DNA of 32,000 nt from Guillardia theta nucleomorph. Lineage: Eukaryota > Protista > Cryptophyta. The translations under genes were made by a program, and so were the position numbers. The notes beneath the pieces are model-generated. The model was not told where the DNA came from. It did not search any database and was given only the letters and a program-made list of their open reading frames with translations. The DNA is taken from positions 60,001 through 92,000 of the forward strand of contig AF165818.4 in the NCBI GenBank assembly GCA_000002975.1, written 5' to 3'. Below, one piece after another: positions 5,667 through 21,320 of this stretch (position 1 is the stretch's first letter; every line of letters begins with the position of its first letter).

Positions 5667-8246
5667 TTAATAATTAACATATATTAGAAATTTTTTAAGT
5701 ATTTTATGTATTAACAAAAAAATATGATCTTTCCTCATTTCTAATTCCCTAGAAATTGAATTAATTTTTTTCTTTTGCATTCCTAATCCTATTAAAATAA
5801 GTATTTCTGAAATCTTCAATTTATTTACTGTGAGATTTTTAAATAGTAAAATTTTACTAATTTTTTTGAAAATATAACCTATGTAATCAAAATCCAAATT
5901 TTTTTTGGTAATAAACATTTTAATTTTTTTTAACTCATAATAGCTTAATAATTGATTATTAAAAAAACAAAATGATTTATCTTTATATCTATTGATCAAA
6001 AAATCATTAATCATATAGAAAATTACTTTTAGTTCTAAATCTTTAAATTCTGTATCAATTAGATTAACAAAGTTTCTAACAAATTTTTTTTGAATATTTA
6101 AAAACCAATTAATATTAATTTTATTAACTTTTAAATCTCTAATCATTATGAATGAATATTTTGTAAAATAAAGATCTCTATTTTTTTTTATAAGAATTGT
6201 TTTAAATTTATTTTTATTCCAAAAAAAAAAAAGTCGAGAGTTCAGATTAAATGAAACTCCTATGTAATCAACTTCTGGAGTTATTCTTGACTTTAAATCA
6301 ATAAAAAGAGATGGATAAAATTGTACTATCTTTTTTTCTTGAGAATGTTTAGAATAAAATTTATTAACTTCATAGTTGTGTGCGTGTTTTTTTTTACAAA
6401 ATTCTTCAAGTTGCTGAATTATCCTAGATCCAAACCCGAGATTTTGAATACCTGAATGTACACCGATTCTTACAATTCTGATACCTGATAATTCTGCAAA
6501 ATTAAAGTTGAAATAATATTTTGAAATAATCCATGGGATAAGATCCCCATTTTCTGAGAATTGATATTGGAATTTTTTTTCAGCATAATTTTTTGAAATT
6601 TGTCCTTCATACGAAATTTGCACAGCTGCTAAAATGTCCGGAATTAAAGACAATGAAATATCTTTTTGATGAATTAAAACAAATATTCTGTGAAATGGCG
6701 AATCACACATTAGCTGCAAGTCATCTGGTGAATTTTTATAATGTGAAAAGAAAAAAATATTGACAATTTTATGAAGAATTTTTCTAGATAATTTATGATT
6801 TGAAAATAACGAGTTCCTATCAACTAGGTATAATTTACACGAAAATGGATCAGGACATAAATTTAATGTATTCAAAGGAAATAGTTCTTTGAAAAAAAAA
6901 TAGTCGTTTATCCATTTTTCTAGATAATCATCTGTTGAATATCTAATTGGTTCTGATAGAATTATTTCTTTATAATAAATAATTTTGTTAATATATCTGG
7001 TTTTATTTTCTAAATTTATGTCTTTTTTAATCCAATCTAAAAATTTAACATTGAATGATCTGCCTGAACCTTCATAACCTTCATAGGTGGTGCTAAAAAT
7101 CGTAATAAATGGCCCGGTAAATGTTTTAAGTATTTCAAATTGAAATGTTGCAGATTCCTCAATAATTAATAATTCAATGAAATCTTTTTTTTCATTAATT
7201 TCCTCGGGTTTTACAAACTTAATAAATTGTTTGTGAGTATTAAATATATTAACTTTATGAATGCATTTTTTTCTTTTATTGAATATTATTTCAAAGTCTT
7301 TATTTTCTTTTAAGCCTATTGTTTCAAGACCTAAAATCAAAAAAGCGTAAAAGGTGTTAACATTTTCTACTGTAGTAGATGTTATAAAAATATTCGAAAA
7401 TCCATAAGCTATAGCTGAACAACAAGCTAATCCTAAAACTGAGCTTTTCCCTCGTCCTCTACCTGAAGTCATAATTATTCTGGAATATTTATTTTTATCA
7501 GCGATAGATTCTGTCAAACTTAAAAATGCTCTTGCTTGATCAAAAGTTTTAGTCTTTTTAATTAAATTATTAATAGGCTGAACATTAGATATACTATCAA
7601 CAAGTTTTATATATAAATTTTTTTTTGACGTATTAGCACTTTCAATTCCTTTGTTTAATAACGAAATTTTACTTTTATATAAATCAAATTTGATATAGTC
7701 ACTATCTATAAAAAAAAAGACAGGACAGTTTTTCAATGCATATAAAAAATTTTCTATAAATCTTCCTAATAAATTTAAATAGATTTTACTTTTTGTGTTT
7801 ATGTTTATATAATTGTCTTCCAGATTAAAATGTTTTTGCTTTTCCAAATGATCAGAAATCAAAATGATAACACCTCCTCCTTCAATAGTTTCAACAATTC
7901 TTAAAAAAATATTCGGGGTAATTGCTTTTAAATCTTGAAGTATACAGATTCGGAATGAATTACCAAGAATTTTTTTGGAATCTTTATAATATAAATATCT
8001 TACTTGCGAATTTTCAAAAAATTCTCTTACTAAAATATTTTTTTTTGATTTTTTTAATTTTTCAAAAGAATTATGATCATTATAAACCCAGAGTATATTA
8101 TTTTTATTTTTAGACGTGTATTTAGACAATAAATAATGAATTTTTGCAATTTCATGTAACACATTACTTCCTGAAATTAAAAATATAGTTCTAAATGAAT
8201 TCTTGTTGGATAATTCTAACAATTGATTTAAATAAAAATCTGACAT
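5667..8246 (-). CDS. kre33: RNA cytidine acetyltransferase KRE33/NAT10
   Basis: LQDLKAITPN..RIVETIEGGG, Walker A GRGRGKSS, STTYEGYEGSGRS, EPIRYS, SHYKNSPDDLQLMCDSP, GDLIPW, GIRIVRIG, acetyl-CoA motif QNLGFGS. Confidence 0.97.
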   Translation of the reverse strand: MSDFYLNQLLELSNKNSFRTIFLISGSNVLHEIAKIHYLLSKYTSKNKNNILWVYNDHNSFEKLKKSKKNILVREFFENSQVRYLYYKDSKKILGNSFRICILQDLKAITPNIFLRIVETIEGGGVIILISDHLEKQKHFNLEDNYININTKSKIYLNLLGRFIENFLYALKNCPVFFFIDSDYIKFDLYKSKISLLNKGIESANTSKKNLYIKLVDSISNVQPINNLIKKTKTFDQARAFLSLTESIADKNKYSRIIMTSGRGRGKSSVLGLACCSAIAYGFSNIFITSTTVENVNTFYAFLILGLETIGLKENKDFEIIFNKRKKCIHKVNIFNTHKQFIKFVKPEEINEKKDFIELLIIEESATFQFEILKTFTGPFITIFSTTYEGYEGSGRSFNVKFLDWIKKDINLENKTRYINKIIYYKEIILSEPIRYSTDDYLEKWINDYFFFKELFPLNTLNLCPDPFSCKLYLVDRNSLFSNHKLSRKILHKIVNIFFFSHYKNSPDDLQLMCDSPFHRIFVLIHQKDISLSLIPDILAAVQISYEGQISKNYAEKKFQYQFSENGDLIPWIISKYYFNFNFAELSGIRIVRIGVHSGIQNLGFGSRIIQQLEEFCKKKHAHNYEVNKFYSKHSQEKKIVQFYPSLFIDLKSRITPEVDYIGVSFNLNSRLFFFWNKNKFKTILIKKNRDLYFTKYSFIMIRDLKVNKININWFLNIQKKFVRNFVNLIDTEFKDLELKVIFYMINDFLINRYKDKSFCFFNNQLLSYYELKKIKMFITKKNLDFDYIGYIFKKISKILLFKNLTVNKLKISEILILIGLGMQKKKINSISRELEMRKDHIFLLIHKILKKFLIYVNY

Positions 8247-8312
8247 TAATTTTAATTTTATTACAGGCTGCTTCTAGAATATTCTTTATTTTATAAAACT
8301 TATTAAACAATT

Positions 8313-8445
8313 ATACTTACCTAGCATTCAAAAATAACTAAAGTTATTTTTTCAATATATTGTATCTGCTTCACATTGATTTGATATTTTGGCTCTAATT
8401 GTTAAGAATGCTAAATTTTTTTTACTGTGGTGATTTTTCCAATGT
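8313..8445 (+). ncRNA. U1: U1 spliceosomal snRNA (compact, divergent); 3' end uncertain
   Basis: Starts ATACTTACCT. Closing helix TAGCATTC (8322-8329)/GAATGCTA (8406-8413) encloses three contiguous hairpins (8330-8351, 8352-8379, 8381-8405). A U-rich Sm-like site AATTTTTTTT (8414-8423) follows. Confidence 0.8.
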
Positions 8446-10047
8446 GTAGATAATTGATCTATTAACATCTTTGTTACTTATTAATTTGTTATACTTAATA
8501 AAAGAAATTATGATTGTTAATGTCATAAATAACATGAAATGATTATATAATATATCAGATACTATATCGAGTTTATTGAACATATTTTTAAATATCAGAT
8601 TGTAAAATATCAGATTTACAAAAGAGTAAAAATTTAATTGAACACATTTTCCTCTCATATTACAAGAGTGGTCTTTAATCATAGTTAGGTTTCCTAATCC
8701 AAAATAACCCACGTTTTTAAAAGCTTGATAATTTTTAATCTTATCTAAGAAAATTTGTTTTCTAAAATGTGAAACATCCAAAACTCTAGTATTTTCCATA
8801 TACAATTCTTTATTATACTTTTTGCTGATAGAATTACATTTAAGATAACTATTTTCATTGAGATCTTTAAAATAATCTAAATTTTTAATATTTTTTGTCA
8901 AACAATTATATCTCCTTAAACTATCGATATCAGAATCGACATTTAAGTTGAATAAAATTTTAAAATTCAGAAAAAAATTAAAATATAATACTAAATGAAA
9001 TATTATTCTACTTTCATAATTTTGAATATTGTAAAATAAAATATTCATCCAACTTATATATAAATTAAAGACATGTTTTATCTTTACATCTTTATTTTTT
9101 ATCAGGATAGCATTTTTGAATACTTTTGGATGATATTTGTTTTGCAATAATGAAAAATAGATTATTTCATCAATTTTATTTTTGGAAAAATGATTATTAT
9201 CAATTAAACCAAAACCATAATAATTAGTTAGACTACATTTATATTGCGTTAACTCTTTATAATTAATTACCTCAACATAATAATCGCATGAGGTGGATAA
9301 ACAAAAATCTTTTTTTATAGTTTTAAAATTTAATCTAAGTATACCCAATACTAAAATTTTAATATTATTTTTAATTGGATAAAAAAGTTCATCTTTAATC
9401 AACAAATTTATTTTTTCAATTTGATTAAAAATTTTCGATTCATTCAAATTCAAAAGGATTTTTTGAAATTTTTGATATTTAGACTTTTCCAAAATTAGTT
9501 CAAACTGAGAGAACTTTTTACAATTTTTACAAATAGTAGGTTTTAATAATTTATCTTTATCATGATTCAAATAAAATTTTGAATCACATAATTTACAAAT
9601 ATAAAAAGCTTTTTTGATCTTAAGATAAGGTTGAAATACATTTAAAACCGATCCTTTTATGATAATCAACTTATTTACATATTTTAAATTCAAACATTGA
9701 CCTAAATTGTTATATATTTGACTGAAATTAAAAAAATTAACTTTAAAAAAGCTTTTTCTTGAAATAAAATTTTTTAATTTTATCAATATTATATTATTTA
9801 AGATTTTGTTAAAACATGATATTATCTCTAATGGAAAATTAATTATCAAGAAAAATAATGAAGGTTGATTCTTACACATTTCTGTAAAATCTATCCAAAA
9901 AATTTTGTCCTTGAAGAAATATTTTCTAATTAATAAATTAGATGTTTCGAGAAAGTTGTTATTATTATTAAAAAAACCAGAGTAAAAGTTAAAAATTGAT
10001 TCTATTATAAACTGATCAGTTAACAATTTTGAGAAAAAAATTATCAT
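8422..10047 (-). CDS. mcm4: MCM-family protein, MCM4-like, highly divergent
   Basis: FPLEIISCF, NKLIIIKGSV, Zn finger AFYICKLC...PTICKNC, SKYQKFQKI, ILVLGIL. AAA+ motifs not recognisable. Paralogue assignment is tentative. Confidence 0.7.
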   Translation of the reverse strand: MIIFFSKLLTDQFIIESIFNFYSGFFNNNNNFLETSNLLIRKYFFKDKIFWIDFTEMCKNQPSLFFLIINFPLEIISCFNKILNNIILIKLKNFISRKSFFKVNFFNFSQIYNNLGQCLNLKYVNKLIIIKGSVLNVFQPYLKIKKAFYICKLCDSKFYLNHDKDKLLKPTICKNCKKFSQFELILEKSKYQKFQKILLNLNESKIFNQIEKINLLIKDELFYPIKNNIKILVLGILRLNFKTIKKDFCLSTSCDYYVEVINYKELTQYKCSLTNYYGFGLIDNNHFSKNKIDEIIYFSLLQNKYHPKVFKNAILIKNKDVKIKHVFNLYISWMNILFYNIQNYESRIIFHLVLYFNFFLNFKILFNLNVDSDIDSLRRYNCLTKNIKNLDYFKDLNENSYLKCNSISKKYNKELYMENTRVLDVSHFRKQIFLDKIKNYQAFKNVGYFGLGNLTMIKDHSCNMRGKCVQLNFYSFVNLIFYNLIFKNMFNKLDIVSDILYNHFMLFMTLTIIISFIKYNKLISNKDVNRSIIYTLEKSPQ

Positions 10048-20398: not shown

Positions 20399-21320
20399 AT
20401 GGTAAAAATTGTCAGCAAACTTCTTGGATGTGATTATAAAAATTTTTTTAAAATAAATTCATTTCCTAATTTTTTGTTATACGGTTCGTCGGGGACAGGT
20501 AAAACTTTCACTGGTAAGTATTGATATTCATTTTTAAGAGATATGTAAATCACAATCTTTAGTTGAAAATTTTTTAAAAACAGCAAGAAACAAAAATATA
20601 ATTTCTAGAATTTTGAAATTAAATGCCTCTCAAAATAACAGTATCAGTATAATTAGAAATAAAATAAAAATATTTTGTAGATCTTCAATTCAATCAAAAA
20701 AACTTAAAGTTGTTGTTATTGATGAAGCTGATTTATTATCAGTTATATCGCAGGAGGCATTAAGAAGAATTATTGAAAAATTTAGTTTATCATCAAGATT
20801 TATCTTAATTTGTAATTATCCAACAAGAATAATTGAACCATTACAAAGTAGATTTATTTTATTTAAAATTGAAAATTTGAATTTCGAAAATATAATTAAA
20901 TTAATAAAATTTTACATTTTAAAAAAAAATATTTGTTATAAATTAGATTTTATTGAGAATGACATACATTCAACTAATGGAGACAAAAGAAAGTTAAAAA
21001 ATTGCTTGAAATTAGATTTAAATCGTATTTTTATGCATTTTAACTCTAATCGAAATTTTATCATCAATGATTTCAATTATAGATATTTATTGGAATTACA
21101 TGACAAAAATATCGATAAAGAAATTATCGATGATTATTTATTAAATTTTTTTATTAAACGTGAGTTATTGAAGAATATTTCTGAAAATATTTTAGAATAT
21201 GAAATAGATTTAGATTATAAAATAAAATTTCTTAGATATATAAGTTATAAAAGATTTAATAAACATTTTAAAAGTGCAGTGATAAAAAATTATTTTCAAC
21301 CGGGGACTCCTGGGAATTGA
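20399..21320 (+). CDS. rfc2: Replication factor C small subunit; two exons (20399-20513, 20563-21320), 290 aa
   Basis: Exon 1 gives FPNFLLYGSSGTGKT (Walker A). Splicing joins it in frame to LKLNAS, VVVIDEAD, QEALRRIIE, RFILICNY, IIEPLQSR. Confidence 0.93.
20514..20562 (+). other. 49-nt spliceosomal intron in rfc2 (phase 1)
   Basis: GTAAGTAT...CAATCTTTAG. Removal gives G|TT (Val) and restores the reading frame. Confidence 0.92.

Follow-up and report, generated by a model that had tools for sequence, protein, structure and literature searches.

Does the spacer between kre33 and an MCM-like gene of the Guillardia theta nucleomorph encode a U1 small nuclear RNA, and if so, is that RNA new and is its fold shared with related nucleomorphs? 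In the U1 snRNP, the 5′ end of the RNA pairs with GUAAGU at intron starts and an Sm ring binds a U-tract. A preliminary description of the DNA analysed here (the window, 32,000 nucleotides corresponding to positions 60001-92000 of G. theta nucleomorph chromosome 1) had proposed that this spacer, said to be among the longest in the window, contains a hidden, minimal U1 snRNA. According to our analysis, positions 8313-8430 of the window (plus strand) are almost certainly the U1 small nuclear RNA gene of the G. theta nucleomorph, encoding a 118-nt, A+U-rich, reduced U1. RNA sequences published for this nucleomorph occur without change in the assembly. The RNA has been published, and the same gene was traced to 12 relatives.

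The U1 locus and its 5′ end

The locus consists of the following two genes.

8313-8430, plus strand: U1 snRNA gene (GtNM-R1), 118 nt; published sequence, length and 9-nt 3′ overlap agree, and it is the best match of a covariance model (R2) built from 12 relatives only
8422-10047, minus strand: MCM-like gene, the syntenic anchor of U1; its stop codon (8422-8424) lies under the last 9 nt of U1

Nucleomorph U1, U2 and U4 were reported from small-RNA sequencing of G. theta (Asman et al. 2019, Genome Biol Evol 11:1117, PMC6461891), and GtNM-R1 is listed there (supplementary table 5) as a 118-nt U1 snRNA with a 3′ overlap of 9 nt with the downstream gene. Its 5′ end (AUACUUACCUAGCAUUC) and 3′ end (GAAUGCUAAAUUUUUUUUACUGUGG, last letters ACUGUGG), together with its length and overlap, place the RNA at 8313-8430 and the overlap at 8422-8430, the comparison being made by ends, length and overlap and not base by base. 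GtNM-R1 and the present locus are the same molecule, with both ends, the length of 118 nt, the 9-nt overlap, a cloverleaf-like fold and the lack of stem-loop (SL) IV in common and no difference in locus. The minimal U1 of the preliminary description was thus borne out by the published RNA, as was its suspicion that such an RNA might already be known and its claim that the 3′ end runs antisense over the MCM-like stop codon; the 3′ end that it gave, 8445, lies 15 nt too far. The word "hidden" fits scans of the Rfam type, which gave no match, but not the literature, in which the RNA has stood since 2019. The G. theta nucleomorph U1 is therefore already known, with expression data, and the locus itself adds nothing new. 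The spacer (8247-8421, 175 bp) ranks fourth among the ORF-free gaps of the window, in keeping with the length ascribed to it.

In the same study, U1 was missed by covariance-model searches and was picked manually from read peaks, folding and an ACUUAC motif. Reads of GtNM-R1 were present in all six small-RNA libraries, including those treated with TE, at 129-426 TPM, and the reads in the TE-treated libraries were taken by the authors as a sign of a capped 5′ end. Coverage stopped seven nucleotides past the Sm site, hence the absence of SL IV; a U1A-like site was recognisable in SL II and the U1-70K site was absent. Relatives were sought for U4 and the snoRNAs only, and no U1 homologues in other cryptophytes were reported (PMC6461891).

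The 5′ end of the RNA is the part that would recognise introns.

8313-8322, plus strand: 5′ splice-site recognition sequence AUACUUACCU, found by motif scans; complementary to GUAAGUAU at two introns

At the DNA level, this conserved U1 5′ end, ATACTTACCT, was present at 8313-8322 as the preliminary description had stated, and no second copy occurs in the window, where shuffles would yield 0.04 on average; the genome searched (551 kb; 551,264 bases in three contigs) has two in all. Where U1 RNAs have a single-stranded ACUUACCU, the G. theta RNA has AUACUUACCU, complementary to the 5′ splice sites of its own genome. The consensus of these sites in the G. theta nucleomorph is GTAAGT, and introns measure 42-52 nt (PMC6461891). 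Matches to GUAAGUAU were located at the introns at 20515-20563 of the window and near position 117943 of the third contig (C3), with 8-9 bp of perfect complementarity to the U1 5′ end. The second genomic copy of ATACTTACCT (C3:117943-117952, minus strand) was considered as a second U1 gene and rejected; it lies antisense to AG/GTAAGTAT at the start of a 44-nt GT...AG intron. Likewise, a match of model R2 at 20434-20521 (minus strand, 18.5 bits) was rejected as a U1, being antisense of the 49-nt intron at 20515-20563. Since the other genomic matches to the U1 5′ end are the antisense of introns, such matches represent the targets of U1.

Two further observations concern these introns. The candidate intron at 20515-20563 (plus strand, 49 nt, GTAAGTAT...TTTAG) splits an ORF that encodes a P-loop (..YGSSGTGKTFT/G), and the published C/D snoRNA GtNM-R13 lies approximately 70 nt from the C3:117943-117952 copy of ATACTTACCT, on the minus strand.

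Fold, Sm site and upstream region of the G. theta RNA

The structural elements of the RNA and the possible promoter element were assigned as follows.

8292-8298, plus strand: TATAAAA, possible promoter element, 15-21 nt upstream of the RNA 5′ end
8322-8329, plus strand: helix H, 5′ strand UAGCAUUC; 8 Watson-Crick pairs with 8406-8413, pair probability 0.90-1.00
8330-8351, plus strand: SL I, AAAAAUAAC / UAAA / GUUAUUUUU (arms 8330-8338 and 8343-8351); 9 bp, pair probability 0.71-0.97
8352-8379, plus strand: SL II as drawn, UCAAU/AUUGA with an 18-nt loop (8352-8356 with 8375-8379); 5 bp, canonical, pair probability 0.04
8381-8405, plus strand: SL III as drawn, UUGAUA/UGUUAA (8381-8386 with 8400-8405); 6 bp including 2 G-U, canonical, pair probability 0.02
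8406-8413, plus strand: helix H, 3′ strand GAAUGCUA, pairing with 8322-8329
8413-8423, plus strand: Sm-like site AAAUUUUUUUU, A3-U8, right after helix H

Helix H, described beforehand as 8 perfect bp between 8322-8329 and 8406-8413, is present as such, and 62 of 20,000 shuffles yielded 8 bp or more of closing helix at this position. The four-way junction in which it had been placed fared less evenly: all of its pairs are canonical and helix H and SL I are near-certain (pair probability 0.7-1.0), but SL II and SL III as drawn are disfavoured (0.02-0.04) because the ensemble favours a single long imperfect hairpin at 8352-8392, and the junction is not the minimum-energy fold of the 118-mer (-14.7 versus -18.4 kcal/mol). 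The overall fold z-score of the 118-mer was -1.87. SL I aligned to SL1 of the family model described below, and SL III adjoins the 3′ strand of helix H, matching the position of SL3 in the relatives.

The loops to which U1 proteins bind elsewhere are reduced. The UAAA of loop I is without a U1-70K-type motif, and loop II contains only AUUGUAU and CUUCAC as against the U1A site AUUGCAC; the UUCAC of this loop aligns with the conserved YCAC in the SL2 loop of the relatives.

The Sm-like tract, previously described as A-U8, was found as A3-U8 at 8413-8423. It is a variant site, AAAUUUUUUUU having no G in or beside the U-run, and the same type is present in all relatives, which carry AAAAUUUUUU at the equivalent position. 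Eight Sm/LSm-fold ORFs above the Pfam cut-off were found in the genome. No SL IV follows the Sm site in the published G. theta RNA, which extends only 7 nt past it (PMC6461891).

The TATAAAA noted beforehand at 8292-8298 is present. It is a possible promoter element of U1, and its occurrence is not significant in a genome of 22% G+C. The sequences upstream of U1 in the relatives and of U2 and U4 in G. theta are so rich in A+T that no shared promoter element could be claimed from their comparison. The octamer TATAAAAC at 8292-8299, 14-21 nt upstream of U1, was also found 22-29 nt upstream of G. theta U2 (C2:71450, minus strand), and TATAATA was found at -11 of G. theta U4.

Canonical eukaryotic U1 snRNA (Rfam RF00003) is about 166 nt in length. 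The G. theta U1 is like it in the 5′ AUACUUACCU, in a helix H that may likewise close a four-way junction with SL I, II and III, and in an Sm site 3′ of helix H. Unlike it, the G. theta RNA measures 118 nt with 22% G+C, has no SL IV and falls below any Rfam threshold; in its SL I, UAAA takes the place of the U1-70K-binding loop, its SL II is shortened with a degenerate U1A-like motif, and an A follows the A3-U8 of its Sm tract, whose U-run neither contains nor adjoins a G. The U1 RNAs of the Bigelowiella natans nucleomorph (102 nt) and Giardia lamblia are likewise miniaturised U1s of reduced genomes. That of G. lamblia also has no SL IV, as cited in PMC6461891; that of B. natans, whose nucleomorph is of green-algal origin, keeps a short one. 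Set side by side by description and not by sequence, the B. natans and Giardia RNAs and the G. theta U1 are independent reductions.

In the proposed mechanism, the single-stranded AUACUUACCU would pair with the GUAAGU(AU) 5′ splice sites of the 17 short nucleomorph introns and mark them for the spliceosome. Helix H would close a junction bearing SL I and one or two more stem-loops, and the A3-U8 tract after it may be the assembly site of a nucleomorph-encoded Sm ring. The RNA has no SL IV and stops 7 nt past this site, where the convergent MCM-like gene has its stop-codon region. Loop II might be bound by U1A, provided that this protein is imported, as suggested by the authors of the 2019 paper.

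Homologues in other nucleomorph lineages

Relatives were reached by way of kre33 homologues, which led to nucleomorph-like contigs, whose MCM orthologues led in turn to more contigs. The kre33/NAT10 beside U1 was most similar to a short NAT10 group that includes an annotated nucleomorph protein of Chroomonas mesostigmatica. On contig L004/L007, ACTTACCT was found not beside kre33 but just downstream of the MCM gene on the opposite strand, and each contig reached via MCM orthologues carried exactly one ATACTTACCT, 140-180 nt past the MCM stop and convergent to it. Scanning metagenome contigs with a pattern that combined the 5′ end and an A/U Sm tract yielded six further distinct sequences. The 12 distinct homologues are those of L007, L008, L010, L011, L012, L014, L020, L021, L024, L026, L027 and L031.

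In all 12, U1 is located between the convergent MCM 3′ end and ClpP (tblastn), with Tic22 and kre33 usually next. The N-terminal 224 aa of the G. theta MCM-like protein align colinearly with the MCM of the relatives (25% identity, E 4e-11). ClpP-Tic22 separates U1 from kre33 in the relatives (L007 4001-5905), whereas in G. theta this block lies at 481-2035 of the window, approximately 6 kb from U1, beyond kre33 and a proteasome gene. This is a local rearrangement in G. theta, in which U1 now abuts kre33 yet stays attached to the MCM gene.

The MCM-like protein itself is unusual. Only its N-terminal/OB part aligns with the 635-aa MCM of the relatives, and it is approximately 90 aa shorter; its sole precomputed Pfam match is MCM_OB, the MCM ATPase domain being absent from the matches. 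A protein word search with this protein returned only itself.

The 12 homologues start with ATACTTACCTGGCAAYAT and end with RTTGTAAAATTTTTT. RNAalifold on the 12 sequences gave helix H and three stem-loops with 37 pairs, of which 16 were changed on both sides (45 cells). Standard pairs were formed in 91.9% of cells, versus 44.6-56.1% when the 3′ partners were slid by 1-3 columns, and the observed covariation score was reached by none of 500 shuffles. Helix H is nearly invariant among the homologues (GCAAC/GUUGU, versus UAGCAUUC/GAAUGCUA in G. theta); where they have GGCAAYAT...RTTGTAAAATTTTTT, G. theta has replaced these sequences with compensated helix H changes. Their SL II is a two-part stem of approximately 50 nt with AUUCCAC, ACGCAC or AUUCAC on the 5′ side of the loop, sequences that, to judge by their letters, are reminiscent of the U1A site AUUGCAC, and it is this stem that mainly makes them approximately 13 nt longer than the G. 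theta U1. All 13 lineages have the same 10 nt at the 5′ end, which shows that the recognition 10-mer is under strict constraint. Past the Sm tract, a conserved hairpin was looked for in the 12 relatives and 0 pairs were predicted, so that the missing SL IV looks like a family trait rather than a peculiarity of G. theta. The homologues resemble the G. theta U1 in the 5′ 10-mer plus GCA, in where helix H lies, in having three stem-loops (in G. theta, as drawn) and an Sm tract of A and U only, in the absence of a conserved hairpin past that tract, and in facing the 3′ end of the MCM orthologue convergently.

The preliminary description had named as a check whether intron-bearing relatives conserve the fold, and these 12 syntenic homologues do, with a covarying four-way junction. 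They support that junction for the U1 family without favouring either of the two possible G. theta folds of 8352-8405. We consider it probable that they form, with the G. theta RNA, a cryptophyte-nucleomorph U1 family without SL IV and the U1-70K loop, situated beside the 3′ end of one MCM gene in at least 13 lineages, and that the alignment is the first proof of its structure by covariation. No report of U1 homologues in other cryptophyte nucleomorphs was found in the searched literature, in which G. theta is the only source of such a U1. What is added by the family, with its synteny and covariation, appears to be small, and it is not a new kind of thing. What the relatives supply is something that the 2019 description was without, its fold having rested on single-sequence prediction. 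If the family is true, its alignment and model offer a way to annotate U1 in other nucleomorph genomes, with the MCM-ClpP spacer as a landmark beside a working model. Metagenomic nucleomorph contigs hold enough material for discovering RNAs by comparison, and the same comparison might find the U5 snRNA that is missing in G. theta.

Covariance models were built from relatives only, R1 from six sequences and R2 from twelve, with G. theta left out. Both models placed 8313-8424/8425 first as a full-length match, R1 with 20.2 bits (E 0.028 in 62 kb) and R2, at 8313-8425, with 21.9 bits (E 0.022 in 45 kb, approximately 0.1 when scaled to 226 kb). The R2 score is weak and leads by a small margin, the next scores being 18.5 bits in the window and 18.1 and 16.3 bits outside it. 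The 226 kb, 41% of the genome, were covered with filters off, taking in all that remained of chromosome 1 as well as 30 kb of chromosome 2, and beyond them the scan was for the exact motif only. By itself the R2 ranking of the G. theta locus is only suggestive; its weight comes with the unique motif and the conserved position.

With Rfam, no U1 was obtained in G. theta at the gathering threshold in the window, at E<=10 in 8250-8500 (251 nt), or with RF00003 in the whole genome; the gathering threshold of RF00003, 69.5 bits, was not reached by the G. theta U1. The relaxed search that the preliminary description had recommended thus came back empty at E<=10, in agreement with the failure of covariance models in the 2019 paper (PMC6461891). 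Among the relatives, no Rfam U1 was found in seven loci scanned together at E<=1 or in the whole of L020. The homologue of L012 was matched end to end (model positions 1-166, 17.1 bits, E 0.016, 191 nt searched), a weak bridge to the canonical U1 family.

Alternative readings of the locus and other U1-like sequences

Any U1 5′ end, read in reverse complement, necessarily gives a perfect 5′ splice site, so the locus can also be read on the other strand. AGGTAAGTAT (8322-8313) would then serve as 5′ splice site to a 47-nt intron (8320 to 8274, ending ...TTCTAG) in the 3′ UTR of the MCM-like gene or the leader of kre33, and the U1 features would be coincidental. The AG at 47 nt falls inside the range of 42-52 nt for G. 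theta introns. Reads were placed on 8100-8700 from one raw-read RNA-seq run and three contig sets. The 80 raw reads, of poly(A) type, showed no significant starts, ends or joints, and a discrete start at 8313 or end at 8430 was not seen in them. Over 8268-8600 they ran approximately 10:1 in one orientation, the same as that of the few reads over kre33, as an intron in a minus-strand transcript would allow, and the contigs of one run break at 8269-8288. The contig sets, which run across the locus and agree with it throughout, may derive in part from DNA or from the source assembly. The spliced joint itself was found in none of the four runs, and a minus-strand intron leaves the closing helix, SL I, the Sm tract and the published discrete plus-strand small RNA unexplained; the 12 homologues, moreover, are conserved in the manner of a structured RNA encoded by the U1 strand. 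We regard this reading as very improbable. The one-sided reads over U1 are probably the 3′ UTR of the MCM-like mRNA running antisense, and since U1 and an antisense transcript are compatible, such a transcript could still exist beside a U1 gene. For expression of the plus-strand U1 RNA, the evidence is that of the 2019 small-RNA data (PMC6461891).

A different view would accept the small RNA as expressed and deny that it is still a working U1, taking it for a relic in decay or for a regulator that acts antisense on the MCM-like gene or kre33, with splice sites read by an RNA imported from the host cytoplasm. The molecule is indeed strongly reduced, with no SL IV, no U1-70K loop and no Rfam U1 match. 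Genes for U1-70K, U1A and U1C were not found in the nucleomorph genome; for the zf-U1 (U1C) domain and the U1-70K N-terminal domain, none of which was detected, the controls of both searches were uninformative. RNA import was raised by the 2019 authors since U5 is missing (PMC6461891), and the introns of G. theta nucleomorph genes are retained at a high rate (PMC6009652). Against a relic stand the invariant 10-nt 5′ end in 13 lineages and the covarying helices, which amount to purifying selection on a U1-type structure, the perfect 8-9 bp complementarity to actual introns, and the Sm proteins encoded in the genome. This second view seems to us even less credible than the minus-strand intron, and a working U1 is the reading preferred here.

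Some other sequences with U1-like or snRNA-like features came up in the searches. In C. mesostigmatica (CP003680.1), a U1-like stretch just upstream of kre33 (L003 4792-4670, minus strand) was tried and rejected; its z-score of +1.24 is no better than shuffles, it has a mismatch at +5 of GTAAGT, and it was unmatched by R2 at E<=1. This stretch has AUAGUUACCU, a closing helix CACGUU/GGCGUG, three small hairpins in its minimum-energy fold and an A-U8 tract, AAUUUUUUUUAA. On the same contig, L003 212-294 (plus strand) was matched by Rfam U4 (RF00015; 23.7 bits, E 0.23) and is probably the C. mesostigmatica nucleomorph U4 identified by Asman et al. 2019. The metagenome scan also gave two groups that are not nucleomorph-like, L016/L017/L028 (48% G+C) and L018/L025/L030 (30% G+C), carrying ATACTTACCTTGCAG... 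and ATACTTACCTCGCAA..., which may be U1 genes of other eukaryotes. Finally, L020 26-214 (minus strand) forms a near-perfect hairpin of approximately 190 nt, scored by plant MIR models at 87 bits versus a gathering threshold of 149, and is probably an inverted repeat.
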